This document shows positions 16,706 through 55,059 of a stretch of DNA of 64,000 nt, in pieces (position 1 is the first letter of the stretch; the number at the start of each line of letters is the position of its first letter). The notes under the pieces were generated by a model. It had not been told where the DNA came from. It searched no databases and saw nothing but the letters and a program-made list of their open reading frames with translations. This DNA is from Macrostomum lignano (Eukaryota), in NCBI GenBank assembly GCA_002269645.1, contig NIVC01002332.1, positions 1-64,000 of the forward strand, in the 5' to 3' direction. The position numbers and the translations under genes were made by a program.

Positions 16706-18003
16706 TTAAGCAGTCAATTCTTTAATGTTTCCGATGAGAAAGTTTGTTTTAGTTCGATAGAATTGCTTTCCTGATGTAGCGCTAGAGAAAGAAGCTTATT
16801 GACATGTACTAACTGCACTAGTTAGTGATTAAAATCCACAAATGCGGTTGATTGCACTTTTTAAAGGTAATTTTTGGATGGATTCATCACTGCGAAAAAG
16901 AGATACGCATAGCTATTAAAACTTTCTCTGAAAAAAAACTCACCAATTTAATGCTCCTTGCTGTCAGCCTGAACTCCTGACAATTTGGCTGTCAAATGAG
17001 CCAAAATAAAAGAAAAACGCCAATCCGTTAGAGCAGCGAATTACCTTGTGCGCGCACTCTGACCCCAATGAGAGTAAATAAGCTACACGACAAGACCTCG
17101 AGGTCATGCAGAATTTCGTGCATGACCTCAAAATGGGTTGTCGTTGGCTTCTCGATCAGAGCCGATCAGGCTTCTCGATGTTAAATCTCATTACTAGACC
17201 AAGAATTTTATGGGACATCTCGCCCGCCCGCTTATATCAATATGGGAAATGGGAATGCTAGCTATGTCAATTTCAATTAAAACCCAGCCTCATAATCCGT
17301 CCGTATTTAATTCGTGGGGCGCAGTTTTGAGACGTAGACAGGATGCGATGTTCATTTATTCCAACCTCTCGTGTTGGAAGAGAGCCAGACCCCTCTCCGA
17401 TAAACCGGATCCATTTTCTGACTAAAAGTTGACGGCCCATGCGTTATAGAATCGAGCCCAGGGGCCACTTATGTACTGCTTCAAGATCTTCAGAGTCTGC
17501 AGTTGTTAACGTAATTCAACAGTTGGTCGTGCAGACCTACTTCAAATAGCTTTGCGCTACGAAAAGGAGGATTTCAAGTTCCAGGTGGCGATCTTGGTGG
17601 ACCCACCATACTTACCCAGTGGTATTGTCTTAATTTTACAATACAGTGTGCGCAATGGTAGTCATTGCCTAATTGCTAATTGCACTCGGAAATTAATATT
17701 GTACAACTCATTACATACCTGCAGTTAGAATAAATAGCAAAATCAGTAGGCCTAGCATAGAGCGATCAGGCGCTGTAATTAGAGCTGTTTAAGTGTGCAA
17801 TGTGCATGGCTGAGTTTTTCTGAGTTCTTCATCCACAGACCCAGTCGACTTTTATCCAATGAAATCAGATTTTAGTATAGCATCTATCTGGTTGGCTGAA
17901 GGCTCTCTCCTATGCATTCATACAAAAGCCCTTAAAACTTTTTGCCTCTAGATGTAAATGAATTTTTTTCTTGACAAAAATTAAACAAAGCGTAGAGTTC
18001 GTC

Positions 18004-21000
18004 ATGACAACCTATCACGTTGTGGAATGCGATTTAAACACCACTGATGCACAGTGCATTGAAGATCAGTGGGGCCAAGCTGCCACTTACAGTGTTGGCC
18101 AATTAACTGCTCTAACCGTGGCTTTAGCCTGCATATTCTTTATCGGCTGCGTTGGAAATTTAATCACCTGCGTAGTGATTGCGCGCACGCAGTTCATGCG
18201 AACTGCTACCAATTTTTATCTGTTCAATTTGAGCGTGTCCGACTTAGTGGTGCTTTGGTCGCGACTGCCCTTCGATCTGCTCACACACTGGAGACGATAT
18301 CCGTTCCCTGAGAGTCAGCTCCTGTGCGTTGGATCCGGTTTTCTATCCGAGATGTGCACCTACTGTTCGGCCCTGACTGTCACTGCTCTGACTGTGGAGA
18401 GATACTGCGCCATCTGCCGCCCGATGCAGGTGTGTCTTCTCAAATTGTGACATTTCATTGGGTTGGAACTACCGGGAGCCGATGTTTCCTTGGGTTGCAG
18501 TTGCTGGGAGGTGATGCTTCCTGGAAGCGGTGCTGCTGGGAGGTGATGCTTCCTGGAAGCGGTGCTGCTGGGAGGTGATGCTTCCTGGAAGCGGTGCTGC
18601 TGGGAGGTGATGCTTCCTGGAAGCGGTGGTGCTGGGAGGTGATGCTTCCTGGAAGCGGTGCTGCTGGGAGGTGATGCTTCCTGCGGTGCTGCTGGGAGGT
18701 GATGCTTCCTGCGGTGCTGCTGGGAGGTGATGCTTCCTGCAGTACTGCTGGGAGGTGATGCTTCCTGCGGTGCTGCTGGGAGGTGATGCTTCCTGCGGTG
18801 CTGCTGGGAGGTGATGCTTCCTGGAAGCGGTGCTGCTGGGAGGTGATGCTTCCTGGAAGCGGTGCTGCTGGGAGGTGATGCTTCCTGGAAGCGGTGCTGC
18901 TGGGAGGTGATGCTTCCTGGAAGCGGTGCTGCTGGGAGGTGATGCTTCCTGCGGTGCTTAACTTCAACGATGAAACACCTGCCTGTCTGATAGTTAAACA
19001 GAAAAAAGTTTAATTTTCAGTTATCATAAAATGCCATTGCAAAAACCTAATTTTAAGCGCGTAAAATAACTCATTATTGGCCTATTATATACAAGAAAAC
19101 CTATCGAATAAAAATACTTCAAACCAGACAGCGAGCTGGAGGGCTGGCTCAGACGGTATTGTAATCCTGAATTGAATTAATTTATTAATATTTCCATATT
19201 GTTATAGAATGAATTTCACCTTAATTTTTGCGTGCATTGAATTCTATCTTCATAAACATCAGTCCAACTAATTAAAAAAATTAGTTAGGGAAGCCAGCAG
19301 AGGCCTATGGGGATCTTGTCAGAAAAGGATATCTTGATTTGGGGTTTGGGATAAACAGGAGATTAAACAGCATTTCTGCGCGCAAACGTTTATAAACTCA
19401 GATTCATTAACGATTTTAATCAGTAAACGTGTATACATACTTTTTAAAAGCGTATTTTCTCGACAAAACCTAACAAATAGCAATGAAAGACCTTGAGTTT
19501 ATCAGGCACAGATATAAAATTAATGTGGATGATCTTTTATAACTTTTCTACCTGGTAACGCATGCTTTGAAAATTTAGTTTTCTAAGAACCCATCGAGTC
19601 CAGTGATTTATTTCACCACGCCTGACATTCTACTGACATCAACATCTCGCCCAGATCCGTCGCGGCCTGGGCCTCAGCCGTGCCGTGAAAGCCATCGCAG
19701 CCTCGTGGAGTCTGTCGGCCTGCCTGTCTGGCGTGATGAGCTCCCAGCTAGGATTCGAAGTTCTAATTCGAAACGACTCAAGCACCGGCAGTCAGGGCCG
19801 AGTGCTGATCGAGTCTCGAATCTGCGAGGTGACCAAGACTCGACGGATTCCGTATTCGTTTCTGGCTTCGTCTCTGCTGCTGTTTGTCTGCCCAATGATG
19901 CTCATGGCGGCCATGTACGTTCGAATTGGCACTGCGGTGCATCGTTCGTTGAATCCGCCAGCGAGGAAGAGCTCGGCCGGCTCGGTGCACAGTCACACCA
20001 GCGACGAGCAGCGGGCGGTGCAGAAGGCGCGGGGTCGAAAAACTCTGCTGAAACTGCTCGGTGAGCGCTTTTTGGGGCGTTTTTTACAGTCCCTGTTGGG
20101 CTTTGCAAGCTCCGTGCGTTTGCAGTCTCCGGCCGGAGATCGCAAGACAAATTTGACTCTGCTTTGCGATCTCCAGTTGCGGACAACGCAAGACATAACA
20201 GTGACTCCCGGGGGGAGACTGAAAGTACCCCAAAGAACGTAAAGCAGCTTAGAGATATCTCCGGGAGAGATCAGAAAGCTCTTTCAATGTCCGGGGAGAC
20301 CAGAAAGTACTTGTACTATCTGGGCGGATAACCGTACAAGACACGGATATTCGAAAGTATAAAACCTGGCATTGATTGAAGACAAGGTTATAGAGATGGT
20401 TGCTAAGATTCTAAGTCTCAATGGGGCTTGCTGAGATTCCAAGTCTCAATGGAGGTTGCTGAGATTCCAAGTCTCAATGGAGGTTGCTGAGATTCCAAGT
20501 CTCAATGGAGGTTGCTGAGATTCCAAGTCTCAATGGAGGTTGCTGAGATTCCAAGTCTCAATGGGGTTTGCTGAGATTCCAAGTCTCAATGGGGGTTGCT
20601 GAGATTCCAAGTCTTAATGGAGGTTGCTGAGATTCCAAGTCTCAATGGGGGTTGCTGAGATTCCAAGTCTCAATGGGGGTTGCTGAGATACCAAGTCTCA
20701 AAGGGGGTTGCTGAGATTCCAAGTCTCAAAGGGGGTTGCTGAGATTCCAAGTCTCAAAGGGGGTTGCTGAGATTCCATGGTCAGTGGGTTTCACTTTATA
20801 CGTCTCTTCTCGCCCAAGTTCAATGCAGTTGCATGCATACGTTGTTTGGAGAACTTGGGAAAAGAACACACTATAATTTGCGTTTTTTGCGGTTGTGAGC
20901 AAACCCGAACGTTAAAAGTGCATAATTCAAAAAAGTCGTTTACAATAACTATTGGCAAACAGTTTCCATGCAGAAGCATCCTTGAGCACATAGCTGTACA

Positions 21001-27252: not shown

Positions 27253-30200
27253 CTATCTGACAGTTTCAGTCTCCAGCCGGTGCAGATGGGGCGATATCTC
27301 GTAGTCGGGCAGGACCAGAGAGAACTCCAGGCCAACAAGGATAGGCAGTTCAAACAGCAGAATCTCTCGTTTAGCCAAACGAAACGCAGTTTCCAGTTCC
27401 TGATGAAACGGCAAGTTTGGGGCTGACATTGTCCCGCAGTCACTCCTGAGTGCAACTCATACACAACGCTCACACAGGGTGCACAGCGGCCCATTGTGCC
27501 AGAGATCCAATAATAAAGCAAAGGTAGGAAGATGCCTTACGTCGAATAAGTTGTTCAATTCGGCTCCTTTGACGTCGTTGAGCTTAGCGGACAGGACCAG
27601 GCTAGCGGCGCAGCAGCACTTCCTATTGGCCTTGTTGATGAGGCCTTTCAGTGCCAGCTTCTCGAAGAATACAAACGATTGGGCCAAAGTCCACAGGTCC
27701 ATGCTCGACTGCGTTGTGAAAAAATAGGGAGAAAAACGTTGAATGGGAGACACACGAGACAAGAAGGGGTGTCTCACGGTATGAATAGAGACAGGAAGGG
27801 TGTCCCACAGCATGGATAGAGAGACAGGAAGGGGTGTCCCACAGCATGAATAGAGACAGGAAGGGGTGTCCCACAGCATGGATAGAGACAGGAGGGGGTG
27901 TCTCACAGCATGGATAGAGAGACAGGAAGGGGTGTCCCACAGCATGGATAGAGACAGGAAGGGGTGTCCCACAGCATGGATAGAGAGACAGGAAGGGGTG
28001 TCCCACAGCATGGATAGAGAGACAGGAAGGGGTGTCCCACAGCATGGATAGAGACAGGAAGGGGTGTCTCAAAGCATAAGGATAGAGACAGGAAGGAGTG
28101 TCCCACAGCATGGATAGAGACAGGAAGGAGTGTCCCACAGCATGGATAGAGACAGGAAGGGGTGTCCCACAGCATGGATAGAGACAGGAAGGAGTGTCCC
28201 ACAGCATGGATAGAGACAGGAAGGGGTGTCCCACAGCATGGATAGAGACAGGAAGGAGTGTCCCACAGCATGGATAGAGACAGGAAGGAGTGTCCCACAG
28301 CATGGATAGAGACAGGAAGGAGTGTCCCACAGCATGGATAGAGACAGGAAGGGGTGTCCCACAGCATGGATAGAGACAGGAAGGAGTGTCCCACAGCATG
28401 GATAGAGAGACAGGAAGGGCTGATTGACAGCATGTATAGATACAGGAAGAGTGTCTCACAGAAGGCACAGAGGACAAGAAGGTGGATGCTATGCTCCAAA
28501 AAAGTTAAAACAGGGTTGCACAAACTTTACCTTTTTAGCAATTCTGTGCAGATCGGCTTTCAAGCTGCGCAGTTTACTCAAAGTCAACTGGATCTGGGGA
28601 AATCTCTCGCGAAATTGTTGATTTAAATCCTTCTTCAGATCCGACGGTCGAACGTATTCCATCACGGATGTCTTAAAGAGACAGGCCATTGTGAAAAAGG
28701 CATGCTTTAAATAAGAAAACTGACAAAATTGAAAGAATTGAACTTACCACGTAGGAGGTGAAATTGAGCACAGTCATATGCTTTCCGCAGGTCAAATCCG
28801 GGTTGTCCAGCAGGTGAGGATGGTAGACAACCAATGGAGCGGATTCTTTAACTGCGCGACAAAACGGAGTAAAAATATGAATAAATTGATACTCGTTCAA
28901 GTTAAAAATGGAAATATTAGTCTATACCTAGATAATTTTACATAGACAAAAATAAATATGGCTGCTCTATATTAGTTGGTAATAATAAATAACACAATTA
29001 CGCATATCTGTCTATACATGTCAGTTATTAAAAGTTAATTGGTAAAATATTAAGATCACTCTAAACCCAAGAACACAATAGACACTGTACCGCAAGGTGC
29101 ATACATCAGGTAGATAACTATTCATTTTATAGAACCACCGAAAATTCCACATGCCCGTGAATTTTAGGTTTAATAGGTTTAGAGACTGGAAAAGTGGAAA
29201 ATCGATAAAACAGACACGCGGAGGGAGGTGGGTGGGTTGAGGGACAGGCTGGAAAATCGATAAAAACACACACGCAGAGAGAGGTGGGTGGGTGGAGGGA
29301 CAGGCTGGAAAATCGATAAAACACACACGCGGAGGGAGGTGGGTGGGTTGAGGGACAGGCTGGAAAATCGATAAAACACACACGCGGAGGGAGGTGGGTG
29401 GGTTGAGGGACAGGCTGGAAAATCGATAAAACACACACGCGGAGGGAGGTGGGTGGGTTGAGGGACAGGCTGGAAAATCGATAAAACACACACGCGGAGG
29501 GAGGTGGGTGAGTTGAAGGTGTAGACTGAAAAATCGATAAAACACACGCGGAGGGAGGTGGGTGGGTTGAAGGTGTAGACTGAAAAATCGATAACACAGA
29601 TTAAGAAGAAAAGGTTTAATAACAGCTGGAAAAGAGTATGGGTCGAGTTTTGAAAAAATATAAAGTAGAAAAAGCTGATGACGGCATCGTGCAGAAATAG
29701 TGTCGTATCAAAGAAAAACAAGCTTTTACTGTTATTAGAAACAGCTAATGTCCGACGTCTGCGGGTGTGGGCTGTAATAAGGGTGCGTTCAGGTGATTTA
29801 TGGTAAGAAAAACTGAAAAGTGCAGATATACACACAATAGAAGAATGCACACTAGTTATTAAAGAGCTGAACTGGTATATTAAAACAATAGGGTCCTAAG
29901 AAAATCACCCATTCTTTTTGCCTTTGGATTAAGGTAAAAACCCATAAAACTTTTTTATCGCAGCGCCAACAAAATGTAAATTTACTGTCAGAAAAATCGA
30001 TTTCGCTTGTTTTTTTGTCAAAGTGCGGACGATTGTCACTGACATCATTGTCACTTTGTCACTAATAGACAGTCAGATTGTCACTGACATCATTGTCACT
30101 TTGTCACTAATAGACAGTCAGATTGTCACTGACATCATTGTCACTTTGTCACTAATAGACAGTCAGATTGTCACTGACATCATTGTCACTTTGTCACTAA

Positions 30201-31370
30201 TAGACAGTCAGATTGTCACTGACATCATTGTCACTTTGTCACTAATAGACAGTCAGATTGTCACTGACATCATTGTCACTTTGTCACTAATAGACAGTCA
30301 GATTGTCACTGACATCATTGTCACTTTGTCACTAATAGACAGTCAGATTGTCACTGACATCATTGTCACTTTGTCACTAATAGACAGTCAGATTGTCACT
30401 GACATCATTGTCACTTTGTCACTAATAGACAGTCAGATTGTCACTGACATCATTGTCACTTTGTCACTAATAGACAGTCGGATTGTCACTGACATCATTG
30501 TCACTTTGTCACTAATAGACAGTCAGATTGTCACTGACATCATTGTCACTTTGTCACTAATAGACAGTCAGATTGTCACTGACATCATTGTCACTTTGTC
30601 ACTAATAGACAGTCGGATTGTCACTGACATCATTGTCACTTTGTCACTAATAGACAGTCGGATTGTCACTGACATCATTGTCACTTTGTCACTAATAGAC
30701 AGTCAGATTGTCACTGAAATCATTGTCACTTTGTCACTAAGAGACAGTCAGATTGTCACTGACATCATTGTCACTTTGTCACTAATAGACAGTCAGATTG
30801 TCACTGACATCATTGTCACTTTGTCACTAATAGACAGTCAGATTGTCACTGACAGCTAGTCAGATGGTCACTGACAGATTCGAATTGTCACTGATAGACA
30901 GTCCAAACAATTGTTAATGACAGTGTCAAATTGTCAAGTACTGATAGACAATCAGATTGTCACTGACAGCCAGTGAAATTGTCACGGACAGTCAAATTGT
31001 CACAAAAAAGACAATCGAGTTGTCCCAGACAGAGCTAACGTATATTTTCTATCACTATTATTATAGGCACTCACTTGGAGATATAGATAGGCCAGTCTGG
31101 TTAGCGGCTGGCGGGTAGGACTCGTGCTCATCAACCGACAGGTAGCGCTTGTAAGAGCCGCTCTCTCGTCGGCGACGAACGGCAGACGGTTGCAGCAGAT
31201 GACCGTAGGACACGGACTGCGGTGGCCATGGGTGTGAATGGCAATACGATAATCATTATTGCTGCATGCCTGTGCTGGATTATAAGCTTCACATTCAAAC
31301 AGTGCGCTAGTTCTCTTCCCTGCTGTCTTCTCCCTCTCTTCCTCTTAGCCTCCCTCTAACTAACTAACTC

Positions 31371-31429
<59 letters not shown>

Positions 31430-31450
31430 GCCTAACTAACTAACTAACTT

Positions 31451-31509
<59 letters not shown>

Positions 31510-31574
31510 TACTAACTAACTAACTAACTCACTAACTAACTAACTAACTAACTGCCTAACTAACTAACTAACTT

Positions 31575-31633
<59 letters not shown>

Positions 31634-31658
31634 TACTAACTAACTAACTAACTAACTC

Positions 31659-31697
<39 letters not shown>

Positions 31698-31746
31698 CAC
31701 TAACTAACTAACTCACTAACTAACTGCCTAACTAACTAACTAACTT

Positions 31747-31793
<47 letters not shown>

Positions 31794-31794
31794 T

Positions 31795-31829
<35 letters not shown>

Positions 31830-31830
31830 T

Positions 31831-31868
<38 letters not shown>

Positions 31869-31872
31869 CAAA

Positions 31873-31923
<51 letters not shown>

Positions 31924-32681
31924 TTAACTAACTAACTAACCAATCAACTAATAAGTAACTAACTAACTAACCCTAACAAACTAACTAGTGCATATTTGAT
32001 TCATGCTGCTGCAGTTTCCTAATGACGCACCTGATTTTCTTCGAAACGCGGCAAAACTCCAAATTGGGCCAGCAGGCTCTCATGAGTCGGCGACACGCTT
32101 CCGCTGGAGTGATGACGGAGTCTGGATTCTGGTTGGTCGCTTCGGCTGGATGAAAGACGATTCGGGAGCAGGGAGGTTGCAATGATAGCCGGTGTGCTTG
32201 CGACAGAGTAGAATCTAGCTAGACTCTAGCAAATATTTCAAACCTTAGTATTCGAAGAATCGTGACAATATTGGCTTAATTAAAAACCCAATGCACTGAC
32301 AGACGAAGTGATGATATAAATGAAATTCTGATACTGAGCCGTACCAGACGGTACAGAGAGACGGACACTAAGACAGACGGACAGACCGACAGACAGACAG
32401 ATAGACAGACAAACAGACAAACTGACATTGAGAAAGACAGACAGACAGGCAGACAGGCAGACAGGCAGGCAGAAAGGCAGGCAGACAGACAGGCAGGCAG
32501 GCAGAAAGGCAGGCAGACAGACAGGCAGGCAGGCAGACAGGCAGGCAGGCAGACAGGCAGGCAAGCAGACACTAAGACAGGCAGACAGCCTATATATACA
32601 TACAGCCTTTACAGCCTATACATACATACAAACAGACAGACAAGCAGCCATTAAGAAAGACAGACAGACAGACAAACAGGC

Positions 32682-32726
<45 letters not shown>

Positions 32727-35700
32727 CACAGACAGACAAACTGACATTGAGAAAGACAGACAGACAGACAGGCAGGCAGGCAGACACTAAAACAGGAAGA
32801 CAGCCTATATATACTCGTATATACAGCCTATACATACATACAGACAGACAGACAAACAGCCATTGAGAAAGACAGACAGACAGACAAACAGGCCGACAGA
32901 CAGACAGACAGACAGACAGGCAAGAATGGAAGTCCTGAACAGTAAAAGTCACTAGAAGGACAGTAGTATAGAATGTAGAAGCATAGAGTATTTAAGAGAA
33001 AAGATTAGCAAGGCAAGCTGTCAGCAGTCCAGAAACATTGAACTAATTAAAAAAACATACCTTGCATTAGCCGAAGAGTCGCGACAAAATTTGACGATTG
33101 AAAAGGCATAGAATGGCGACTTCCGGTTAGTAACAAGGACGCATCTGTAAATAGTTTAAGGAGGCAAAATACAGTTTTATATTATATAACGCTTTACTAA
33201 ACTAGAACTTCCAGAAAAAGTTTATAAATAGATGCAAGAAGCAGCAGTAGAGTTCACTCAATCAATGGATGCTAAAACTCATTCATTGGCATGCACTTCC
33301 GGTTGGCAATGCAAACGCAAGCTAAATACAATGCAGTATTACTGTATTACACTACATCCTGCACTATAATACCAGCTTCAATCACAATGGAAGCGTGCGC
33401 TGGGACATGAACTCTGCTATTGAATAATTCATAGAACGTTTTATTCAAGATGCAATATACCTTTCGCTTAAGCGATCCTTCTTGACAACTAGGCCAGTAG
33501 TGGTGGGCGGACAGCGATAAACACCTTTCGGCGGAGATATTGGAAACTCCGTGATTGAGTCGGTTGAAGTCGAGACTGAACTGGACTTATGCCGCTGTCG
33601 ACCGACTAGATTTAGAGTTTGAAATTTTTGCGTTTCATTATAACAAGCAATAGTAATTCGCAGACTGTTTATTTAATTAGATAGTTATAATATTGTAAAC
33701 TTCTTAGGTATAGTAAATGCGTTTATCGTATATGCATATTTATTAAATATATTTTGGTAAACTGCTGTACTGCATATTGGCAGACAGCTATTCCTAGCTA
33801 TCTAAAGTAGTAGGGAAAATGTGGGAAGTGGACACTGTTGCAGGGAAAGCCGTGGAAACTCCGTGGGCCCGTATCGGACGGGCGCCTATGTGTTAGCATG
33901 GGAGAACTCTTGCCCACCGGGAAGCCGCGGAAATTCCGTGGGCCCGAATCAGATGGGCGCCTATGTGTTGGCATGGGAGAACTCTTGCCCACCGGGGAAG
34001 CCGTGAAAATTCCGTGGGCCCGAATCAGACGGGCGCCTATGTGTTGGCATGGGAGAACTCTTGCCCACCGGGGAAGCCGTGGAAATTCCGTGGGCCCGAA
34101 TCAGACGGGCGCCTATGTGTTAGCATGGGAGAACTCTTGCCCGCAGGGAAAGCCGCGGAAATTCCGTGGGCCCGAATCAGATGGGCGTCTATGTGTTAGC
34201 ATGGGAGAACTCTTGCCCACAGGGAAAGCCGTGGAAATTCCGTGGGCCGGTATCAGACGGGCGCCTATGTGTTAGCATGGGAGAACTCTTGCCCACAGGG
34301 AAAGCCGTGGAAATTCCGTGGGCCGGTATCAGACGGGTGCCTATGTGTTAGCATGGGAGAACTCTTGCCCACAGGGAAAGCCGTGGAAATTCCGTGGGCC
34401 GGTATCAGACGGGCGCCTATGTGTTAGCATGGGAGAACTCTTGCCCACAGGGAAAGCCGTGGAAATTCCGTGGGCCGGTATCAGACGGGCGCCTATGTGT
34501 TAGCATGGGAGAACTCTTGCCCGCAGGGAAAGCCGTGGAAATTCCGTGGGCCGGTATCAGACGGGCGCCTATGTGTTAGCATGGGAGAACTCTTGCCCGC
34601 AGGGAAAGCCACGGAAATACCATGGGCCCTCCTAGTGAGAGTACATAGGCCTTTGGGTTCCTTTCAGCGGGCAGAGCAGCTCAGCGCGGTGAGCGTGTGT
34701 GTGAGTGCGTGCCTGGGTACAGTATTAACGCGCTTATACATGTACACACGCTCACACAGGGTGTATAACGGCCCTGACTGTCTAGTCATCAGGAATGTAC
34801 ACTCTCTCTGCCTTGTGGCTTGGCCCTCAATAAATCGAACGTGCACACTAGCCCCAAATGAAAGTGGCGGCACATGGCATCGAACCAAACAAGTCACAGC
34901 CCTGAGCTACTAAGTTCTCACCCTACAATAAAAAATAATATATTCACCGTTAACTACGCTCATAGATGGCCAATAAAAGTCGTATTGAAAGTTTTGAATT
35001 CTTTCTATCATTTTTCCTCAGTTGCACGCGATTAAGATCAACCAGGCTTTTAGATTATGATGAGGCATCGACCTCAAAAGGACACGCGATGTGGCACAGA
35101 CGCTGGGATGGGAGCGAGTTTTCACCCGGCTGGCGATAGCTATGATTATAAAAAGTGTCGATTCCTCATTCTCAAACTACTTTCCCCTCTAGTTCGAACC
35201 GACCCCGAGGCGATTAAGGAATTCATCCGCAATTTCTCTGTCTTATAGACGGAAATGCATTGAGCCACGAGTTGAAGAAAGAGAAGAAGAAGGGCAGACA
35301 GAAAATTATATAGAAATTTCCCTTAGCCTGTAATACACCGCCAGTGCTAGCATACCAATAGGAAACCGGTGGCGCAAAAACAAGTCAATGAAAGTGAAGT
35401 TCACACAGTCACGTCTCACATGGTTTCGTCTTGAAGCTGCGTAAATTGAAAGGCTGAGTGAAAGGAAGTGGAGCGGAAATGGGGGGGTGGAGAGAAAGGA
35501 GAGAGAAGATCGGAGAGAGTGGGGGCGGAGAGGGGGAGCAGAGGGAGGGGGTGGATACAGAAGGGCGGAAAAAGAGGGAGCGGAAAGGGAGGAGTGGAAA
35601 GAAAAGCAACGGTACACAGAAGGGCGGAGGGAGGGGCGGAAAGAGGAGGAGCAGACAGGGTGCGGAGAGGAGGGGGCGGAGAGATGTGCGGAGAGAGGGG

Positions 35701-38700
35701 CGGAGAGGAGGGGCGGAGAGAGGGGCGGAGAGGACGGGCGGAGAGGAGGGGCGAAGAGAGGGGCGGAGAGAGGTGCGGAAAGAGAAGGAGCGGACATAGG
35801 GGGCGGAGAGGGGGCGGAAAGAGAAGGAGCGGACAAAAGGGGCGGAGAGAGGGGCGGAAAGAGGAGTGGACAAAAGGGGCGGAGAGAGGGGCGAAAAGAG
35901 GAGGAGCGGACATAGGGGGCGGAGAGGGGGGCGGAAAGAGAAGGAGCGGACAAAAGGGGCGGAGAGAGGGCGGAAAGAGAAGGAGGGGACATAGGGGGCG
36001 GAGAGGGGGCGGAAAGAGGAGGAGCAGACAGGGTGCGGAGAGGAGGGGGGAGAGAGGGGCGGAGAGAGGTGCGGAAAGAGAAGGAGCGGACATGGGGGGC
36101 GGAGAGGGGGCGGAAAGAGAAGGAGCGGACAAAAAGGGCGGAAAGAGAAGGAGCGGTCATAGGGGGCGGAGAGAGGGGGCGGAGAGAGGGGGCGGAGAGA
36201 GGGGGCGGAGAGAAGAGCAGTGGGAGACAGAAGGGCAGAGAGTGGGCGGGACAGGAGGTTGGGAGAGGAGCGAAGATGGAGGGCGGAGAGGGGAGCGGAA
36301 AGAGGAGAAACAGACAAAGAGGGCAGAGCGGATGCAGAGACAGACAGAGGGCAGAAAAAGGAGAAACGGACCGCAGGAGCAGACAGGGGGTGGAGAGAAG
36401 AGGAGAGGGATATGCAGGGAAGCCGTGACGGAAACGCAAGAAGAGATGATGATAATATAAGAGTAGAGAGCCTAGAGGAAACATCCGTGGAGGAAACAAT
36501 TAGTTCTAATGAGTGCGTCTTCTTAACCGTTTCATATTAAACAAAAACTCAAGCTATTGCAATTTACATGAGCAGCATAAACCAAAGAAATGACAGCAAA
36601 AATTATACCGCAACACCGAGTAAAGTAAATACTTAATGTGTTAGATAATAAAATCGAAATGCCATCAACACCACGATTGTTATTGATTTTCAATATTGAC
36701 AGATGCTAGCAATAAATACAAGTAATTGCAGCAGGTTTCATACTTAATACTTTTGATTAAACTGCTATACCGATACATATATCTGATATTACCTGCTTGT
36801 ATGGCGGCGTTAACGTTAGCGGGAGCTTAGAATGTTGGGATAACAAGTCATAGGCATTATACACAATGATAAAATCAACACAGATACAAGCCAATAAAAT
36901 ATTAATTATGCTTACAGAAGCTTTCAATTCCACGAAACGATCGAGTCCTAGTTCGCTTTCGAGAGCCGTTCGAAGAGCTGCAGCACAATTTAGTTAGGTA
37001 GGTACAAAATTATAAATTAGTGTCTCAATATCCCTGTGTCACTCTCAATATTCGTGTGTCACTCTCTTTATCCCTGCGTCACTCTCGCTATTCCTGTGTC
37101 ACTCTCGCTATCCCTGTGTCACTCTCGCTATTCCTGTGTCACTCTCTTTATCCCTGCGTCACTCTCGCTATTCCTGTGTTACTCTCGCTATTCCTGTGTC
37201 ACTCTCGCTATTCCTGTGTCACTCTCGCTATTCCTGTGTCACTCTCGCTATTCCTGTGTCACTCTCCCTATTCCTGTGTTACTCTCGCTATTCCTGTGTC
37301 ACTCTCGCTATCCCTGTGTCACTCTCGCTATCCCTGTGTCACTCTCGCTATCCCTGTGTTACTCTCCTTATCCCTGTGTCACTCTCGCTATCCCTGTGTC
37401 ACTCTCGCTATCCCTGTGTCACTCTCGCTATCCCTGTGTTACTCTCCTTATCCCTGTGTCACTCTCCCCATTTCTCCGTTACTCTCCCTATTCTTGCGTC
37501 ACTCTCTTTACCCCTGCGTCACACTCCCTATTCCTGTCGCTATCGCTATCCCTATGCCACTCTCTCTCTATTCGTGTCACTCTTCCTATCCCCGTATCAC
37601 TATCAATATTATTGTCACGCTCAATATCCTTCTGTCACTCTCTCTATCGCTGTGTCACTCTCTCTATTCCTGTGTCACTCTTCATATCCCTGTGTCATTA
37701 TCCCTATCAATGCATCACTATCAATATCACTGTCACACTCAGTATTGCTCCGACAATCTTCACATCCCCTGTCATTCTACATATCACACTTGTAAATCTC
37801 CGTGATTTTTAAGTTGTTCCGTCTCTCTTTACCTCTATTAAATCAAACGATTGCTAGTACTCTGTCATTCCATAAATCCACGATATCTTTATAACACATT
37901 CTCATCATCGCCTACCTAAAAGGCCCTCCAATAATTTCAGCCAAATCTGCGATATCTTCGACGCCGCCTCCACCGCCGACTACGCCGTCGCCACGATCTG
38001 ACGTTGACGAGGCCGCTTGACGACCAAAAATGGAGGAGCCCTGAGCTCCACTACCAATCATAGTGTCGGGTCCAGACAATGAACTGTGATTAGACGACGA
38101 AGTTGTTCGAGATCGATCGGCCCGCTGCCGGCTCCAGCGTCTGCTACTAGAAGAGTAGTCGAAACCAGATGGGACGCTTAATTGAGCTCTAAACTCCGAT
38201 TGAGTTCGATAGCGAACCGCAACGGCTACGCCAGCGTCGGTGGGAGGCGACAGACTCTGGCCGGGCACCTCGACAAACAGCGGCAGCGGCGACTGATCGG
38301 CAGACTGACGCCTGTGCCGATGGTGACCGCCGCTATGCTGCTGCTGGTGGTAGTGCTGGTATTGAGGATTTCTCGTCGACAATGAGCCAGCAACAGCTGC
38401 AGCGGTCGCTGATGATTCCAAACTGTTTCCAATCTGCGAGCACAGAATTATAAAACACCGATATCAATTTCGATGTTTTTTTACTTAAAATCTGTTTTTT
38501 TGCTTGCTTTTCAAAGAAGATGTCCACCAATCGGAACGCCCACTTTCTCCAAAGTTACGAAAACGTAAATTCCTGGAAATCTCCACATCCTCGAAAGTCA
38601 CTTTCAGTAATCAAAAACGTCACTTCCTGGCAACCTCCAAATCTTCGAAAACGTCACTTCCTGGAAACCCCCAAATCTTCGAAAACGTCACCTCCTGGCA

Positions 38701-40380
38701 ACCTCCAAATCTTCGAAAACGTCACTTCCTGGAAACCTACAAATCTTCGAAAAAGTCACTTCCTGGAAACCTCCAAATCTTCGAAAAAGTCACTTCCTGG
38801 AAACATCCAAATCTTCGAAAATGTCACTTCCTGGAAACCTCCAAATCTTCGAAAAAAGGCACTTCCTGGTAACCTCAAAATCCTCGAAAACGTCACTTCC
38901 TGAAAACCTCTAAATCTTCGAAAACGTCACTTCCTGGAAGCCTTCACATCCTCGAAAAAGTTACTTTCTGGGAAACCTCCACATCATTTTAAGATGCCAC
39001 TTTCGAGAAAGTTTAAATTAAGGATTCACGCCTAAAGATTTGATACAAAGCATTAACAGGATTTTAGTAACTATATAAACCCAGATTTAAAAAATCTTAT
39101 TTATATGAAAACATGCAAATGCATTAATCAAATTCAAAGGTCAAGACTTGTCCGAGAACCTTCCTGGCAGTGCCTTATCATTCTGGTGAAACCGTAGAGA
39201 ACACAGTTATATATTGTAAATTAGCCAAGTTACTAGCACATAACAGCTTGCAGATTGACGTCATTCAAAAGGAGACGAATGCAAGTTGTCTCGAAGAACC
39301 TTTTAAAACAGAAAAAGCCACCCCTCTCTACTATCAGGCAAGCAGACAGACAGATTTCATGCGATAGCGGATCGCTTTCAAACACGATCTCTTTATCAGC
39401 GAGTATAGCTAAATAGAATTTAGACGAATAGCCGCAAGAAGAAACTGAGGTCTTATTGATGACGTCCACGAACCAATAGACTTTTGCATTAGTATAGTAT
39501 CAGTAAGTGCACAAACACGAAAAAGTAAAATAATTAGGAAATATGAAATTAAAAAAAAATTTGTCCGTACGTTTGAGTTTTGAGAATTCTGCAAGGTCAG
39601 TTTAATGATGTGTGAGATTTGCAAGGTCAGTTTGAGGATCTCTTCGGATCTGTAAGTCTTCTCAATGTCAGTTCGATGATCTGGGAAGTCTTCAAGGTCA
39701 GTTTAAGGATGTGGGAGGTTTGAAAGGTCAGTTTGGGGATCTGCACGTGGGTCTTCAAGATCAGTTTAATGATTTGGAAAGTCTTCAAGGTCAGTTTAAG
39801 GATGTGGGAGGTTTGCAAGGTCAGTTTGGGGATCTGGGGGTCTTCAAGGTCAGTTAGATGATCTGGGAGGTCTGCAAGGTCAGTTTGGGGATCTGAGAAG
39901 CCCACGTATATGCAGACTTTGAAACCAACTCATAGTTATCAGACAAATCAGCAAAAGCACACTCACGCTGCCAGCAATTTCATCCTGATTAACAACGCTG
40001 CAGACTGCCGAACGGCTAAATTCGTCGTTGTCATCAACGAACTCGCTGCCGCAGATGGCAGTGGAGGCACCTTCGCAACAGGCGCTGCTGGCATCGTCGT
40101 CGTTGTCCAGTTGATCGGCGTCTGCAGCGGCCGAGGCGCAATTTTCGCCATAGACGCCGTCAAGCGAGATGCTGGCCAAAAAGTTCAAAGCGGCCGCGCG
40201 TTTGCGCGCTTTCAGACGCGCCGCGGCGCGCAAACGCTTCGACGATAGTCGAGCCGGATTCGACGGGGAATCGGCGGCGTTTGTGGCTGACGCAGTATTC
40301 GACGTTGCCGAAGCATCGGTGTTGTTGCTAAGCGGCAAGTTCGGAGGGCGAGGCGACCGTCTGGTCTGGGGTGGCTGCAA
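27253..40380 (-). CDS. CABLES: CDK5 and ABL1 enzyme substrate (Cables) homolog, 9 coding exons; start codon not found on exon 1
   Basis: Exons (minus) 40380-39967, 38433-37916, 33144-33061, 32196(or 32214)-32031, 31216-31075, 28851-28748, 28671-28531, 27708-27541, 27399-27253. All GT-AG with matching phases, total 1884 nt. Motifs [125 protein letters not shown] match the Cables N-terminal motif and cyclin-like C-terminus. Confidence 0.9.
27760..28450. repeat. 32/34-bp minisatellite in CABLES intron 7 (CATGGATAGAGACAGGAAGGGGTGTCCCACAG)
   Basis: About 20 units. Confidence 0.96.
29190..29595. repeat. 55-bp minisatellite in CABLES intron 5 (GGAAAATCGATAAAACACACACGCGGAGGGAGGTGGGTGGGTTGAGGGACAGGCT)
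   Basis: About 7 units; GGAAAATCG recurs at 29251, 29307, 29362, 29417. Confidence 0.93.
30028..31020. repeat. 45-bp minisatellite in CABLES intron 5 (GATTGTCACTGACATCATTGTCACTTTGTCACTAATAGACAGTCA)
   Basis: About 18 near-perfect units to ~30855, then a decayed tail. Confidence 0.97.
31355..31985. repeat. (TAAC)n microsatellite in CABLES intron 4
   Basis: About 150 units. Confidence 0.98.
32365..32920. repeat. (ACAG/GCAG)n compound microsatellite with an internal ~190-bp duplication, CABLES intron 3
   Basis: GACA/GGCA runs. The CAGCCTATA...CATACATACA...CAGCCATT block occurs twice. Confidence 0.9.
33840..34630. repeat. 76-bp GC-rich tandem repeat in CABLES intron 2
   Basis: Repeat ORFs start at 34166, 34242, 34318, 34394, 34470 (period 76); about 10 units. 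Confidence 0.96.
35460..36420. repeat. purine-rich GGGGCGGAGAGA low-complexity array, CABLES intron 2
   Basis: Recurrent GGGGCGGA(G/A)AGA motif, with almost no T on the plus strand. Confidence 0.9.
37030..37805. repeat. 20-bp minisatellite in CABLES intron 2 (TTCCTGTGTCACTCTCGCTA)
   Basis: About 23 good units plus a decayed tail. Confidence 0.95.
38555..38990. repeat. 34-bp minisatellite in CABLES intron 1 (CGAAAACGTCACTTCCTGGAAACCTCCAAATCTT)
   Basis: About 12 units; CGAAAACG at 38646 and 38680. Confidence 0.93.
39590..39895. repeat. degenerate ~30-bp repeat in CABLES intron 1 (AAGGTCAGTTT core)
   Basis: About 10 units. Confidence 0.8.
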
Positions 40381-40479
40381 CTGAGTTTGGACAAGATGCA
40401 ATGTCTAATATTAATCATTTATATGCTGAGATTCTGTTTTACAGCTCACGGCGATTGTCCAAGGGAGACTCTCTGAGAA

Positions 40480-41535
40480 GCTTGGGGTTTGTGTAGCTTG
40501 GAGTTTGTGTAGCTTGGAGTTTATGTAGCTTGGGGTTTGTGTAGCTTGGAATTTGTGTAGCTTGGAGTTTGTGTAGCTTGGAATTTGTGTAGCTTGGAGT
40601 TTGTGTAGCTTGGAGTTTATGTAGCTTGGGGTTTGTGTAGCTTGGGGTTTGTGTAGCTTGGGGTTTGTGTAGCTTGGGGTTTGTGTAGCTTGGAGTTTAT
40701 GTAGCTTGGAATTTGTGTAGCTTGGAGTTTGCGTAGCTTGGGGTTTGTGTAGCTTGGAGTTTATGTAGCTTGGGGTTTGTGTAGCTTGGGGTTTGTGTAG
40801 CTTGGGGTTTGTGTAGCTTGGAGTTTATGTAGCTTGGAATTTGTGTAGCTTGGAGTTTGTGTAGCTTGGGGTTTGTGTAGCTTGGAGTTTGTGTAGCCTG
40901 GAGTTTATGTAGCTTGGGGTTTGTGTAGCTTGGGGTTTTTGTAGCTTGGGGTTTTTGTAGCTTGGGGTTTGTGTAGCTTGGAGTTTGTGTAGCTTGGAGT
41001 TTTTGTAGCTTGGGGTTTGTGTAGCTTGGAGTTTGTGTAGCTTGGGGTTTGTGTAGCTTGGGGTTTGTGTAGCTTGGGGTTTGTGTAGCTTGGAGTTTGT
41101 GTAGCTTGGGGTTTGTGTAGCTTGGGGTTTGTGTAGCTTGGGGGTTTGTGTAGCTTGGGGGTTTGTGTAGCTTGGAGTTTGTGTAGCTTGGGGTTTGTGT
41201 AGCTTGGGGTTTGTGTAGCTTGGGGTTTGTGTAGCTTGGAGTTTGTGTAGCTTGGAGTTTGTGTAGCTCGGGCCCTCGGGTTTGTGTAGCTTGGGGTTTT
41301 TGTAGCTTGGAGTTTGTGTAGCTTGGGGTTTGTGTAGCTTGGAGTTTGTGTAGCTTGGTGTATGTGTAGCTTGGAGTTTGTGTAGCTTGGGGTTTGTGTA
41401 GCTTGGGGTTTGTGTAGCTTGGAGTTTGTGTAGCTTGGGGTTTGTGTAGCTTGGAGTTTGTGTAGCTTGGGGTTTGTGTAGCTTGGGGTTTGTGTAGCTC
41501 GGGCCCTCGGGGTTTGTGTAGCTTGGAGTTTGTGA
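40480..41535. repeat. 16-bp minisatellite between TRMT11 and CABLES (GTGTAGCTTGG[A/G]GTTT)
   Basis: About 65 units. Confidence 0.97.
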
Positions 41536-41800
41536 AAACTGATTGTTCAGGAGTGATACTGAGACAAAAAGTAATTGCTGATGTATTTCATACATTGTAT
41601 ATTTGTTTTAATTTAAAGCAAGCATTAAATGCAGCACATTGTGTAGATAAAAGAGCAGTCAGAAGAAGTAACAAGACGTAAGTTTTCACCAAAATAATCC
41701 CAAGTTTTGAATTTATAGGCGCATAGTTTAGATAATCAAAAAACACACTGTTGAAAAATGCCGACACTCTACTGATATCAGTAGTAGAGCTCATCTTTTA

Positions 41801-44800
41801 CTACTTTTTACGGCTATAGTGGCTAGATCTTAGCTGGTGATGATCGTGATTAACAATTGTAGCGCCATTACTAGCCATAGCAACTAGTTCAGGCGTATCG
41901 ATCATAGGAAGCCGTTGAACACAGACCATCACTCTGGCTGTACGATGCGTCATGGGCAGTTCAACAGAGGCAATTAGCTGCAAACATGGATGCACTGGTA
42001 GACTGTCGGCGCCTTTGTACTCGGATTGGATCACTGGGAACCAGTACACGCATCTGTAAATATGTATATGGTTACATATTAGACGGTTGAGAATATAATT
42101 CAAGGCAGAGTCATTCACTATTCTACTTACGATACTCACGGCCATCGATATCTAGAAACACACGATCACACAAGGTTGTCTACAGTGCATTGATTTTCAT
42201 CGTCAGCAATGTTCACAATTGTAAATCGTGTGAGTTGTGCGATCAGATCTGGTGCAAGGACCACTGTAGCATAACAGGACGTAAAACTCAAAAGATTGTG
42301 TAATTTTCTGGAGGTCTTTTTCCTGGAATGGAACACTCTGCAGGGATAGGAAGAACTAATTTTCATCGCGAAATTAATGATTAAATTTGATCTGGGACAG
42401 TGAAGATGACCATTGTTTTAATGTAGCATGAACATGATGTTACTCTGTGCTGTGCTGTGTTGTGCTATATATTTGTATAGTGAAAGTTTAATTTTCATAT
42501 TGTTTTCTAGCTATATTAAATTCTAAATCTGCCTTAAAAGTTAATAAATATGTATTGAAATGGAATTATACCTACAATATTGGCTTAAGAGTACCAGCAT
42601 GCGATATTTTATTACAGATATTTACTCAGAAACATTGAAAAGTCACCACTCTATGCGCCAGTGAGCACTTTCTCTTGGACTATTCTAAAATAAAAGGGTT
42701 AGCTTTAATCCGTCCAACCCTCGCACACCGCTCCCCCCTTTTCATTCGTCAACTCAAGTCTGCTAAATAGAGCTAAGTTGCGTCACTAGAAAATATTGTG
42801 ACGACCTGCACTCTCAAAAGTGACGAACCACAGACGGAATCTTCTGTGATAGCGACTTTTCAGCGTTGCTGAGTATTCTTGTTAAAGAAGGAACAAAAAA
42901 GGTTCAGCTAAGGCCATTTGTGAGTATTTAAAACTTTGGGCTTATTAAGTAAAATATAACAATATAAAATTAAACTTTCTGTATCCGCAGGGTATATTTT
43001 TTCCAGGAAATTGGCCTCCAATAAAATTACACGATCTTAAAGTTTTCACATCCTGTTATACTACAGTGTTCCTTGATTTGATGGCGATGTAAACCAGCGG
43101 TGTTCCCCAAGATTATTTAGATTATCAAAGTAGTTAGAAGACTAAAACCTACCGACCACCAGGTACAAGCCTCATCGCGCAGAATCCCAACAGATCCGAT
43201 ACGCTATCGCCAAGAGAATAGTGCTCTTTCGGCGGGAAATAGTTCTCATCCAACTTTTTCGGCCCACCATCCGGATCGCGCTTCACTTTTCGGCTTCGTT
43301 CTCGAATACCGTAGGGCGGATCAGTCAGGACAGTGTCGAATAAAGCGCTATGCCGCCACAGACCAACGTGCTGGCTGGCGTCGCCAACTAAGCAATCAAC
43401 AAATCGATTAGAAATACCGTACTGAGCAAAATTAGCCGACAAGCGTTCGTCCTCCGTACGCTTCTGGCGGCGCATTTCGGCTTTAGTAGATTTGCCCAAT
43501 CCGAATACGATATTATAATCCACATCTTGGCCTAAACAGTAGGCGCCTAAATAGCCAGCGGATACTAAGATACTACCGGAGCCAACAAACGGATCAACAA
43601 CTAGCTGTCCAGGCGACACTCTAGCCAAGTTGCACATGATGAAAGCTAACTGAACGTTCATTGACGTATTGCCGATAAATATCCGGCGGGATAGGGACAG
43701 GTTGTGCAGTGCCGCTCGGGACTGGCCGGAGCAGAGCTTTGGAGCGAGATAGACTCTGACCGGAGTCTGCGGGTGTCAGACCGGTGGGTAGGATGAAGCA
43801 TGCAGTGAAGTATTGAATTTTTTTATTTTGCGATGTGTTGTCAATTCTCAATAGTATGCCCCTACTTACGTTGCAGTTAAAGGTTGTTTTTCAGCAGATT
43901 TAGCGCAAATATACTACTGACACTATACTACTGAGTGTAATACAAACGCTATCCCACAGATACTAAAATAACTGGATGGGCCACTCAGGCATATACTTAG
44001 TAAAACAGCTTTCTACTTTCAGTTCAGTAGCAAAGAAGAATATGTCAACAGCTATTTTATAAAAATAAAGGCAGTTGAAACGATTTGGTAAGTTTAGAAG
44101 CCCAAGCTGGCAGGCGTAAACAACTTGCTAATTGGCTCAGCAATCATGTACGAGTACGAGTAAATTAGCCAGTCCACTGAAATCTTTGCTACGAGAATAG
44201 ATGCTAGATAGGGTGTAACAACTTCTGATCGTCTTAGAGACAGAACGAGAGCTGAGTGCGATTTGTTTCGATCGGCTTTCCAAGTAACTCATTGTAGGTA
44301 CTACTAACCTTGTCAGTGACAGCTCCGGCTGTCAAGTCGTAGCGCCAATGCTCCAAATAATAGAGCTCAAATTCCGGCTTTTTTAAATCCACTTGACCAG
44401 GCATATCTAGGCCAGCCTCGCCAAACTGATCAACAATGCCAACCTTGAAGTCCATAGCTGCTGATACGTTAACCAATTCTATACACATTCTCCATCTAGT
44501 CCAGGCGCCATTGTCAAAGCCTGACGAAGCTTCCGCTAGATAAGGCGCCAGTTCTCCATTAGTCACGTGATTAAGCATGGTCAACAAGCAGCTAGTCGAT
44601 TGCCACACTCGCAGTAACGATTTAATCAATGCGCTTCGTTTAACAACTTGGCGTAATTTGATTTCGTCTTCGCACAGTATGCACACAACCGAACGAGATC
44701 GCCACCAAGTTGAGCATAATTGTAATTTATTGTTGCCAATCGAGGCTTCTGCTGCAACGCCGGTCCAATCGTGAACGCCGGCGTTTGTTGGCGTATCGCT

Positions 44801-45016
44801 AAAGAGTTCATCCGACCAAATTGGCTGCTGCTGGCTATAATTGGCTATTAATTGTCGTTCGCGATCGATTCCGGTGAAAACTACGCCAAATCGACAATCG
44901 AATAGTCCGGCTAGAGAGACGAATTCGGCGAAACGAAATTGAGCATACTCGCACGAAGCGTATAGCAGGATGTACTCTCTGGCCTCGGTAGTAGTCGGGC
45001 TTGTAATAGTCTCCAT
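41801..45016 (-). CDS. TRMT11: tRNA (guanine(10)-N2)-methyltransferase TRMT11 homolog, ~524 aa
   Basis: Exons (minus) 45016-44309, 43766-43153, 42053-41801; phases 0 and 2; total 1575 nt. Motifs EYAQFRFAEF, GQVDLKKPE, FIGNTSM, VDPFVGSGS, FDTVLTDPPYGIRE, GGRCVYWFPV, HPCLQLIA. Confidence 0.95.
42255..43075. mobile_element. ~820-bp MITE-like element in TRMT11 intron 2 with degenerate ~115-bp TIRs
   Basis: Left CAAGGACCACTGTAGCATAACAGGACGTAAAACT...CCTGGAA versus right TTCCAGG...CATCCTGTTATACTACAGTGTTCCTTG (reverse complements). TSD not evident. Confidence 0.7.
43954..44183 (+). mobile_element. ~225-bp interspersed repeat, copy 2, in TRMT11 intron 1
   Basis: Collinear with 8646-8867. Confidence 0.8.
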
Positions 45017-47062
45017 GGACTGGAAATTGCATGCGAATCAACTGAATTAACAGGAAAATTTAGCTTATAAACATACAACCAAAGTCAGGCAATTTTGCAT
45101 TCACGATATCTGGTCCTGTTGCTTTAATTACCACCCTATCAAGAGTAGTACAGCATACCGTTAAACAATCAACATTCGAGCACTTTTCAGCTTTTATTAA
45201 TTCAAGAGACTTGTACTATTGTAGACCAATTTGTAGTGTGAATGTAACATCTGTTGAACGAAGACTAACATTATAGATAATCGCAAGCCCCGAAAATGAA
45301 TGGAACAACAAATACGACAGTCAAGTATAATAACATTTAAGTTAGTCCGTTACACATGTATACCTGTCTATATAATCATAAATACTATTAAATATATTAC
45401 GCATTTTGTCCAGCAATGCTTTTCCTTAAATACAATCACAAATACACATTCTAAAAAGCCGTTGAAAATAAAAAAAGCAAATATGTCAATTTCTTTTTAA
45501 TGAACACGACAAGCCAAATTTTGCGGACGTTTTTTTGTTAACAAAATGTACAGATAAACAATAAAAGTATATAGTAATTCAAGTACACGAGGACATATAA
45601 TCTGGTCGAATTTAAACAACAACCAACCGATTTTGTTTTAACGACCACATATAATCAGTACTCTCATGTAAATACCATTTTAAGACTTTAGACTGCGCTT
45701 GGCTATAAATTTTCTAAGCCCCACCTTCATCAGACCCAGTGCCGAACCAGCCAATTGTGGTTGACTGGGCTTAACCGGGCTTTTAACTCGCTGTCTCGTG
45801 TGGGTGGGCTGGCTATATTATCGATGTTTCTAAACCCGCCAAGCCAATCTTATCTTATCTAACTTTTATAATCGGCGTCAAAATTACGGGCGGCTAACCA
45901 AATTGCTGTTTAACAATTATATACTCGTAGATCTAGACATTACACTATTAGATTAGACAGTCACGACAAAAAGTACATTAAAAAAACAAAACAGCACTAG
46001 GCTTGGGCAAGCAATATAATTAAAGCCCATTAGTATTAGAAATTAATATAAAGTTTAGACAGACCAACATATAACAGATACAAACTAATGTCTGTTAATT
46101 TAAAGTTTGTCTAGCTTTAGGCTAATTATGGTTATGGTTACTTTTCAATTGAATATAATGATTAACTAATGTAGGTATAATACGAGTAACAAAGACTACT
46201 GACTATATAAATAGTACATACGAAGCAATATTTTTCTATAAAAAAATAAAACAGAAACTTTATAGAGCTAGAATGGACGAAAACTGTGGCAAGCTGTAAA
46301 TTAATAATCAAAATCAAATGACATGGAATATTTTTTTATCTATAATATAAAGTAGCAACAATAAATCGAAATTGACAAAGACTTTAGATTATAAGTAAAA
46401 AAAGCTTAACAATTCATATGGAATTACAAGTTTGAATAAGGTACTAATTTGCACTCGATATGTAGTAAAATTATAATCAATTTAATATTCATCTAATACT
46501 AGTACAACACCACTATAATGTCACAGAGACGGAAAGTAAACTGAGAAATAAACTATAGTCAAGAGAGCCGAATCCAGTGTTATAAACTGAGCACCGCGAC
46601 TGATTGTAAGATCGATGACAGAAATTGAAAACTTGCAACAAAAGAATGACAAAATTTAAATACAGTAAGTAAACAAACAAACAAATTTCGACGAATTGTG
46701 TCTCGCTTAGCTATCACAGAACGATAGGAATTTTCTGAAGAACTTCTTGAAAACAATTACAAACAAAAGAGAAAAATATAAACCCAAAAGAAACACAAGT
46801 CACAAAACTCAACAAACTATGTGCTATATTACTTATACAAGTAGTGCAAATTAGATTCTTGGAGGCAATATAATTTAACAAATAATTAGGATATTATTAA
46901 AGCACACTTAACAAAACAACGATGTAATTTCATTAACATTAAATCAAAAACTCAAGTTTTTTGTGAAGCAATCTATTTAACTGTTCAGCCATCAAAACCC
47001 ATAGTGGACAATTAGCCAGAACTCTTCATGCAACAGTCTTAGGGCTCGAAAATCGATTGTCT

Positions 47063-51616: not shown

Positions 51617-55009
<3,393 letters not shown>

Positions 55010-55059
55010 GCTTGTAGCTATCATGATATAATTAAACGAAATATTTAGCTGAAAACTAG

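Follow-up and report, generated by a model that had tools for sequence, protein, structure and literature searches.

In a 64,000-nt stretch of the Macrostomum lignano genome (positions 1 to 64,000 of contig NIVC01002332.1, in the following called the window), we identified a gene for a homolog of CDK5 and ABL1 enzyme substrate (CABLES) whose first exon encodes the conserved N-terminal motif of the family and offers no start codon upstream of it. With moderate confidence, we favor the explanation that the start codon is donated in trans: the pre-mRNA would be joined to the spliced leader (SL) at a pair of tandem acceptors, and the AUG at the 3′ end of the SL would open the CABLES frame. All CABLES coordinates given here refer to the minus strand of the window, whose numbering appears equal to that of the contig.

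The C-terminal exons of the gene match CDK5 and ABL1 enzyme substrate 1/2 of many protostomes with E = 1e-58 to 1e-76. The encoded C-terminal domain also matches the Pfam family Cyclin_N with 21.7 bits, just below the cut-off of 23, and other members of the CABLES family match Cyclin_N too. As in CABLES1/CABLES2 of other animals, the C-terminal domain is cyclin-box-like (55–68% identical) and the N-terminal motif R-R-R-x-A-A-L-x-F-L-x-x-I-S-L-D-G is present. In tblastn searches of the window with the CABLES proteins of Owenia and Lingula, residues 4–42 aligned to positions 40245–40144 (E = 4e-5 and 5e-4), and the segment F-L-x-x-I-S-L-D-G was found in 107 of the 120 retrieved CABLES homologs. 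Homology searches with exon 1 alone returned no match even at E ≤ 10, the motif being too short for a database this large, and 41 bases of exon 1 had no exact match in the metagenome contigs scanned.

From 40380 to the donor of exon 1, the CABLES frame reads LQPPQTRRS…EIAGS, with the conserved motif inside. Consistent with a previous sequence-only reading, which described the motif frame as shut by an in-frame TAG and free of an upstream ATG, we counted not a single in-frame ATG in the 146 codons between this TAG and the exon 1 donor. All five ATGs of exon 1 (at 40316, 40151, 40094, 40034, and 39983) lie in frame +1, and the earliest in-frame methionine of the gene model is residue 261, encoded in exon 2 far past the motif. 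The exon stands out by a GC content of 0.60–0.61 (flanks 0.40–0.45), and a test of codon usage, with 1,620 codons of the window as the training set, clearly supported the CABLES frame in the segment 40236–39967 (+31 and +18 bits). The lack of methionine from a low-complexity stretch of 138 residues is by itself no rarity, and each acceptor has a one in three chance of being in frame. What goes beyond chance is the conserved N-terminal motif without any upstream AUG of its own.

The AGs directly before 40380 (ctcAG/TTGCAG, with the slash marking the predicted junction) and before 40374 (ttgcAG/CCACCC) are both in phase 0 with this frame. An SL junction at either of them is in frame and stop-free into the motif, in agreement with the phase proposed earlier for these two acceptors; additional phase-0 AGs directly precede 40404, 40365, and 40236. 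The top motif of M. lignano trans-splice acceptors is [T/C]TNCAG (PMC8629364). This motif is matched by TTGCAG/ in front of 40374 and by TTCCAG/ in front of the neighboring gene TRMT11, and ACTCAG/ in front of 40380 fits only its CAG.

The public annotation places 5′ ends at the same two positions. Window positions 55019–31801 are identical over 23,219 bases (100%) to the reversed region 31801–55019 of NIVC01002332.1 in assembly GCA_002269645.1 (Mlig_3_7), here numbered as locus L003, for which genes for TFIIE-beta (311 aa), a Rab protein (209 aa), TRMT11 (525 aa), and a 677-aa protein have been called. The coding sequence (CDS) of the latter, which is CABLES, starts at L003:14646, corresponding to window position 40374, the first base past the AG. 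A second copy of the locus, 88–99% identical to the window, lies on contig NIVC01001876.1 (locus L002). Its annotated CABLES CDS of 679 aa starts at L002:14598, the T of ctcag/TTGCAG and hence the equivalent of window position 40380, and the two-residue difference between the proteins is what a 6-nt shift of the annotated start would give. As a control, the range of the neighboring Rab gene begins at its own ATG (49247), from which we conclude that the annotated ranges are coding ranges, and that of TRMT11 ends on the last base of its stop codon. Three annotated CDSs, CABLES in both copies and TRMT11, have no ATG at their start and begin at the first base past an AG. The M. lignano annotation was produced with TBONE, which cuts transcripts where trimmed and mapped SL-containing reads pile up (PMC5730564). 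In the simplest reading, 40374 and 40380 are therefore used trans-splice sites and the two acceptors previously proposed, and judging from the annotation coordinates it is very likely that CABLES is trans-spliced there.

Two details of this region deserve mention. The hexamer TTGCAG (40375–40380) resembles the 3′ end of the SL, TTGCATG, and a mismatch-tolerant trimming of SL sequences could in principle turn unspliced reads into an apparent end at 40374; for the 40380 end of the second copy, this doubt does not arise. A TATAAAT at 40416–40422 on the minus strand, located some 40 nt 5′ of the acceptors and kept in both copies, could represent a promoter of CABLES itself with a very short outron, or be there by chance.

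The SL of M. lignano is 35 nt long, CGGTCTCTTACTGCGAAGACTCAATTTATTGCATG, with the 3′ end …TTATTGCATG, followed by GTAAG in the SL RNA gene, and about 30% of the genes in this species are trans-spliced (PMC8629364). It contains a single ATG, located at its 3′ end, as had been assumed from flatworm SLs in general. All SLs of parasitic flatworms reported so far end in ATG (PMC12582326), and the final ATG of the SL was considered a likely translation start codon in a paper on Macrostomum genomes (PMC10468722). With both acceptors in phase 0, the SL AUG is in frame at either of them: joined to 40374, it yields AUG CCA CCC…, translated MPPQTRRS…, and joined to 40380, M-LQPPQ…, and neither product meets a stop before the motif. 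In the window itself, we found no SL RNA gene, as Rfam gave no matches and searches with the M. lignano SL and with a generic TGCATG/GTRAG pattern yielded nothing or chance-level hits.

According to this explanation, the CABLES pre-mRNA would be transcribed from its own promoter or jointly with the upstream TRMT11, and SL trans-splicing at the tandem acceptor would make the exon start either behind TTGCAG/ (at 40374) or behind CTCAG/ (at 40380). The predicted junction would read …TTTATTGCATG joined to CCACCCCAGACC or TTGCAGCCACC, and a read across it would contain TTTATTGCATG joined to CCACCCCAGACCAGACGG or TTGCAGCCACCCCAGACC. The SL would thereby supply the cap and, with its final AUG, the only in-frame AUG upstream of the CABLES motif. 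This AUG is also the first one on the predicted trans-spliced mRNA. In the scanning model, the ribosome uses the first AUG that it encounters. Ribosomes starting at the SL AUG would make a protein extended N-terminally by about 46–48 residues before the motif, and leaky-scanning ribosomes that passed it would encounter solely out-of-frame AUGs in the window copy. Given trans-splicing at these acceptors, we infer that the SL AUG is likely the working start. Our confidence in the full explanation is lower than in either of its two parts because it is the product of both.

Several points weigh against it. The trans-splice sites were taken from annotation coordinates, and the sequence context of the SL AUG is weak, with a U at −3. 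The codon-usage signal is ambiguous in the segment 40380–40237 (−5 and +13 bits), so the first 48 codons could be untranslated. Across about 100 protostome homologs, the phenylalanine of the motif is residue 17–24 and the initiator methionine lies 16–23 (mostly 18–19) residues upstream of it. At the corresponding position, the window CABLES has the codons CGT and TTG and no ATG and does not follow this pattern; a start at the SL AUG would instead place the phenylalanine at residue 65–67. The in-frame ATG present at codon 26 of the second copy could be the ancestral start, of which the window copy would then be a start-loss variant. Finally, the public 677-aa model was not exactly reproduced: our homology-guided model of ten exons (27253–40374, all introns GT-AG) encodes 671 aa. 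In search of the missing 18 nt, we enumerated GT/AG pairs near the anchored exons and allowed an additional exon after exon 2 and before the fourth exon, and only implausible variants reached 677 aa.

The second copy and a further paralog help to weigh the alternatives. Comparison of 1,462 exon nucleotides between the two copies gave 14 differences, seven synonymous and seven nonsynonymous, with no indels and no stops. Copy-specific bases include 40304 (C/T) and 40281 (A/G). Both CABLES copies are intact, and the window copy does not look decayed. The ATG at codon 26 on NIVC01001876.1 differs by one base from the ACG of the window; neither copy has another in-frame ATG 5′ of the motif. A second, divergent CABLES paralog is represented by M. 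lignano matches (P0001–P0003 and P0277 among our retrieved proteins) that are 62–68% identical to the window CABLES in the cyclin-box region. One of these, P0277 (UniRef A0A1I8ISV9, 780 aa, 5′-partial), has the motif KARRRIAALNFLSNISLDGVY at about residues 128–148, likewise lacks a methionine at the canonical place, and is extended at its N-terminus by an open stretch of over 125 residues. Both M. lignano paralogs thus differ from the CABLES proteins of other protostomes, which have a genomic ATG 18–19 residues before the phenylalanine, in lacking this codon and in having long, unrelated N-terminal extensions. A transcript from a related Macrostomum (SRR28338165, Logan) belongs to the other CABLES paralog and is 5′-truncated, with no SL seen.

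If the window copy had lost its start codon, the true start would be the codon-26 ATG of the second copy, the window copy would be poorly or not translated through the motif, and function would rest on the other copies. The single-base difference between ACG (40305–40303) and ATG is compatible with such a loss, as are the large recent duplications known in M. lignano (PMC5730564, PMC8629364). However, this ATG of the second copy itself comes after the in-frame SL AUG and lies 13 nt downstream of an out-of-frame ATG, so scanning would rarely start there. The window copy shows no other decay, given the absence of stops and indels and the balance of synonymous and nonsynonymous changes, and the second paralog is equally devoid of a methionine near the motif. 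We therefore regard a loss of the start codon as unlikely.

Alternatively, translation could begin at a near-cognate codon within exon 1, with the upstream part serving as 5′ untranslated region (UTR). Candidates are the ACG at 40305, the TTG at 40233–40231, in the canonical methionine position, and the CTG at 40215–40213; in a variant of this idea, the SL would be joined at the phase-0 AG before 40236. The codon-usage signal for the frame is strong only from 40236 onward, and the canonical methionine position of about 100 orthologs falls at AAG/CGT TTG, so that an SL AUG joined at 40236 would restore the canonical spacing. However, the annotated 5′ ends lie at 40374 and 40380 and none at 40236, a site with a poor pyrimidine tract in GC-rich, exon-like sequence (0.61 in the segment versus 0.40 upstream). 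The near-cognate codons have a poor context, with C at −3, and an in-frame, cap-proximal AUG would be used before them, which makes these starts rather improbable.

It is highly improbable that the protein starts at Met 261 without the N-terminal motif: this is the first genomic in-frame AUG, but it is preceded by five out-of-frame AUGs, and its use would discard a motif kept in most of the homologs and in both M. lignano paralogs.

The slimmest chance remains for a cis-spliced upstream exon, either the one running from the ATG at 41794 to TTG/GTGAAA, pointed out earlier as a weak option and indeed found as an open frame of 35 codons ending in phase 0, or one further upstream: the former lies in the TRMT11 3′ UTR, its TTG/GTGAAA donor scores 3.6 bits (donors for 41794, 3.6–4.9) versus 5.1–9.8 bits for four homology-supported CABLES donors on a generic donor matrix, the only other spacer ATG with a phase-0 GT (41595) has negative donor scores, and the acceptors mark the start of the annotated transcripts in both copies. 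Altogether, the spacer from the TRMT11 stop (41801) to exon 1 contains no credible cis exon with an ATG.

Returning to the preferred explanation, a start at the SL AUG after trans-splicing, the suggestion that CABLES translation may depend on trans-splicing gained support from the species, its SL, the annotated acceptors, and the frame. It may hold for the window copy only, considering the in-frame ATG at codon 26 of the second copy, and the start at the SL AUG is deduced.

On the minus strand, the four genes GTF2E2, Rab, TRMT11, and CABLES follow one another head to tail. The window TRMT11 protein is 99% identical to M. lignano TRMT11 (UniRef A0A1I8GFF7; PAA63067.1, PAA58786.1). The acceptor suspected 3 nt before its ATG and in frame with it was recovered as ttccAG/TCC ATG, with the annotated start at TCC. 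From the TRMT11 stop (41801) to the CABLES acceptor at 40380, the spacer measures 1,420 nt, or about 395 nt after subtraction of a 1,025-nt tandem repeat. The second copy has a spacer of 779 nt, in which the same 16-bp repeat spans about 440 bp, or about 27 copies (L002 14083–14521), making the repeat length the main difference between the two spacers. In M. lignano, genes have been assigned to operons if they lie on the same strand, the downstream gene is trans-spliced, and the repeat-adjusted spacer is below 1 kb (PMC8629364). By this definition, the pair TRMT11-CABLES would count as an operon, and trans-splicing would then be obligatory for CABLES.

For GTF2E2, an acceptor followed by 39 stop-free nucleotides in frame had also been proposed. 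It is present in the sequence and fits the acceptor motif, although the length of the annotated product does not corroborate an exon start at 55048. Our three-exon model gives 307 aa from MDPALL; judged by length alone, the annotated 311 aa fit a start at 55021 (IATSMDP…), and 55048 would give 320 aa. Another in-frame ATG lies at 55024–55022. Position 55021 directly follows …TCATG, similar to the SL 3′ end …GCATG and with no AG before it, and this annotated start could be an artifact of SL trimming. The coordinates of all these features are compiled in Table 1.

Table 1 Features of the CABLES locus and its neighbors in the window (slashes mark splice junctions).
Feature	Position	Strand	Basis or remarks
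Tandem trans-splice acceptors ACTCAG/TTGCAG/ (predicted)	40375..40386	-	Phase 0 with CABLES frame; motif fit of TTGCAG; annotated 5′ ends
CABLES exon 1	39967..40380	-	Annotated CDS start 40374 here, equivalent of 40380 in second copy; donor AGC/GTGAGT after 39967
In-frame TAG shutting the CABLES frame 5′ of the acceptors	40405..40407	-	Sequence
Codons of the conserved CABLES N-terminal motif	40156..40206	-	tblastn, homolog comparison
ACG (Thr) codon of the window copy; ATG (Met) in NIVC01001876.1 (L002 14672-14674)	40303..40305	-	Copy comparison; one-base difference
CABLES exons 2-10, homology-guided model	38433-37916, 33580-33461, 33144-33061, 32214-32031, 31216-31075, 28851-28748, 28671-28531, 27708-27541, 27399-27253 (stop TAG)	-	All AG/GT-flanked
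Weak cis option, ATG plus 35 codons to TTG/GTGAAA	41690..41794	-	Begins 6 nt past the TRMT11 stop, in the TRMT11 3′ UTR
TRMT11 CDS as annotated (PAA58786.1), 525 aa, 5′-partial, SMETITS…	41801..45019	-	Starts after TTCCAG/; own ATG 45016-45014; stop TAG 41803-41801
ATTAAA, likely TRMT11 poly(A) signal	41607..41612	-	Sequence; just upstream of the repeat
Tandem repeat, 16-bp unit (CTACACAAACCCCAAG on minus strand), 63.5 copies, most of the TRMT11-CABLES spacer	40479..41503	.	Repeat analysis
GTF2E2 5′ end: acceptor TTTCAG/, exon from 55048, 39 in-frame nt free of stops, then ATG 55009-55007 (MDPALLRE)	55007..55054	-	Sequence

Elsewhere in the window, the same CTGTCTGT-rich satellite, which reads LSVCLSVCL in translation, occurs in a CABLES intron (32280–32950) and in a GTF2E2 intron (52220–52860). 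Long tandem arrays are common in introns, for example at 39662–39895, 35400–36500, 53650–54610, and 30023–30860. Further genes include an intron-less open reading frame (ORF) of 433 codons for a Cys-loop (nicotinic-type) receptor subunit on the minus strand (9141–10439) and a G-protein-coupled-receptor-like gene on the plus strand (17962–20239).

The donation of start codons by the SL has been known in flatworms since the work of Cheng, Cohen, Ndegwa & Davis (2006) on Schistosoma mansoni, and the ORFs concerned have been named slORFs, as cited in PMC9851317. According to the same secondary account, the SL AUG lies in frame in 28% of trans-spliced S. mansoni transcripts, and over 40 cDNAs require it (Cheng et al. 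2006). CABLES resembles these slORFs in that AUG forms the 3′ end of the SL, the frame runs through the predicted junction without a stop, and the recipient exon offers no usable AUG ahead of the conserved sequence. In contrast, it is a different gene, in a free-living macrostomid, known from genome sequence and annotation, and its second copy keeps an internal in-frame ATG. The absence of another in-frame AUG upstream of the motif applies to the window copy and not to the second one. The locus also agrees with the trans-splicing and operons described for M. lignano (Wudarski et al. 2017; Ustyantsev & Berezikov 2021) in its [T/C]TNCAG acceptor, the neighbor on the same strand, and the repeat-adjusted spacer below 1 kb, and trans-spliced genes in this species are mostly conserved genes, as is CABLES. 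Start-codon donation to individual genes is not a subject of those papers, and we arrived at trans-splicing of CABLES from annotation coordinates. Our search of the literature and supplements found no publication on CABLES or TRMT11 in M. lignano, nor, within the library searched, one naming both Macrostomum and CABLES1. CABLES is thus most likely a well-supported new example of a mechanism already established in flatworms.

If this is true, the public 5′-partial CABLES model is complete once the SL is added, and the conserved N-terminus of CABLES is made only from trans-spliced mRNA. This would be of practical use for the annotation of M. lignano, in which 30% of the genes are trans-spliced and many CDSs are flagged as partial. 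The gene also offers a clean test case, as transgenesis is possible in M. lignano and the natural copies differ in ATG versus ACG. With the mechanism already established, the picture in the field remains unchanged, and what most deserves to be pursued is how the copies differ in ATG versus ACG. Tentatively, the two recent copies may capture a start codon in the course of passing to the SL, a possibility that we consider open to considerable doubt: the canonical ATG is gone in both paralogs, and the last internal ATG is kept in one copy and replaced by ACG in the other. An in-frame SL AUG, once acquired, would make exon-encoded ATGs dispensable. If such a handover took place, in-frame trans-splicing would relax selection on genomic start codons, and the many 5′-partial gene models of the genome could be screened for this signature.

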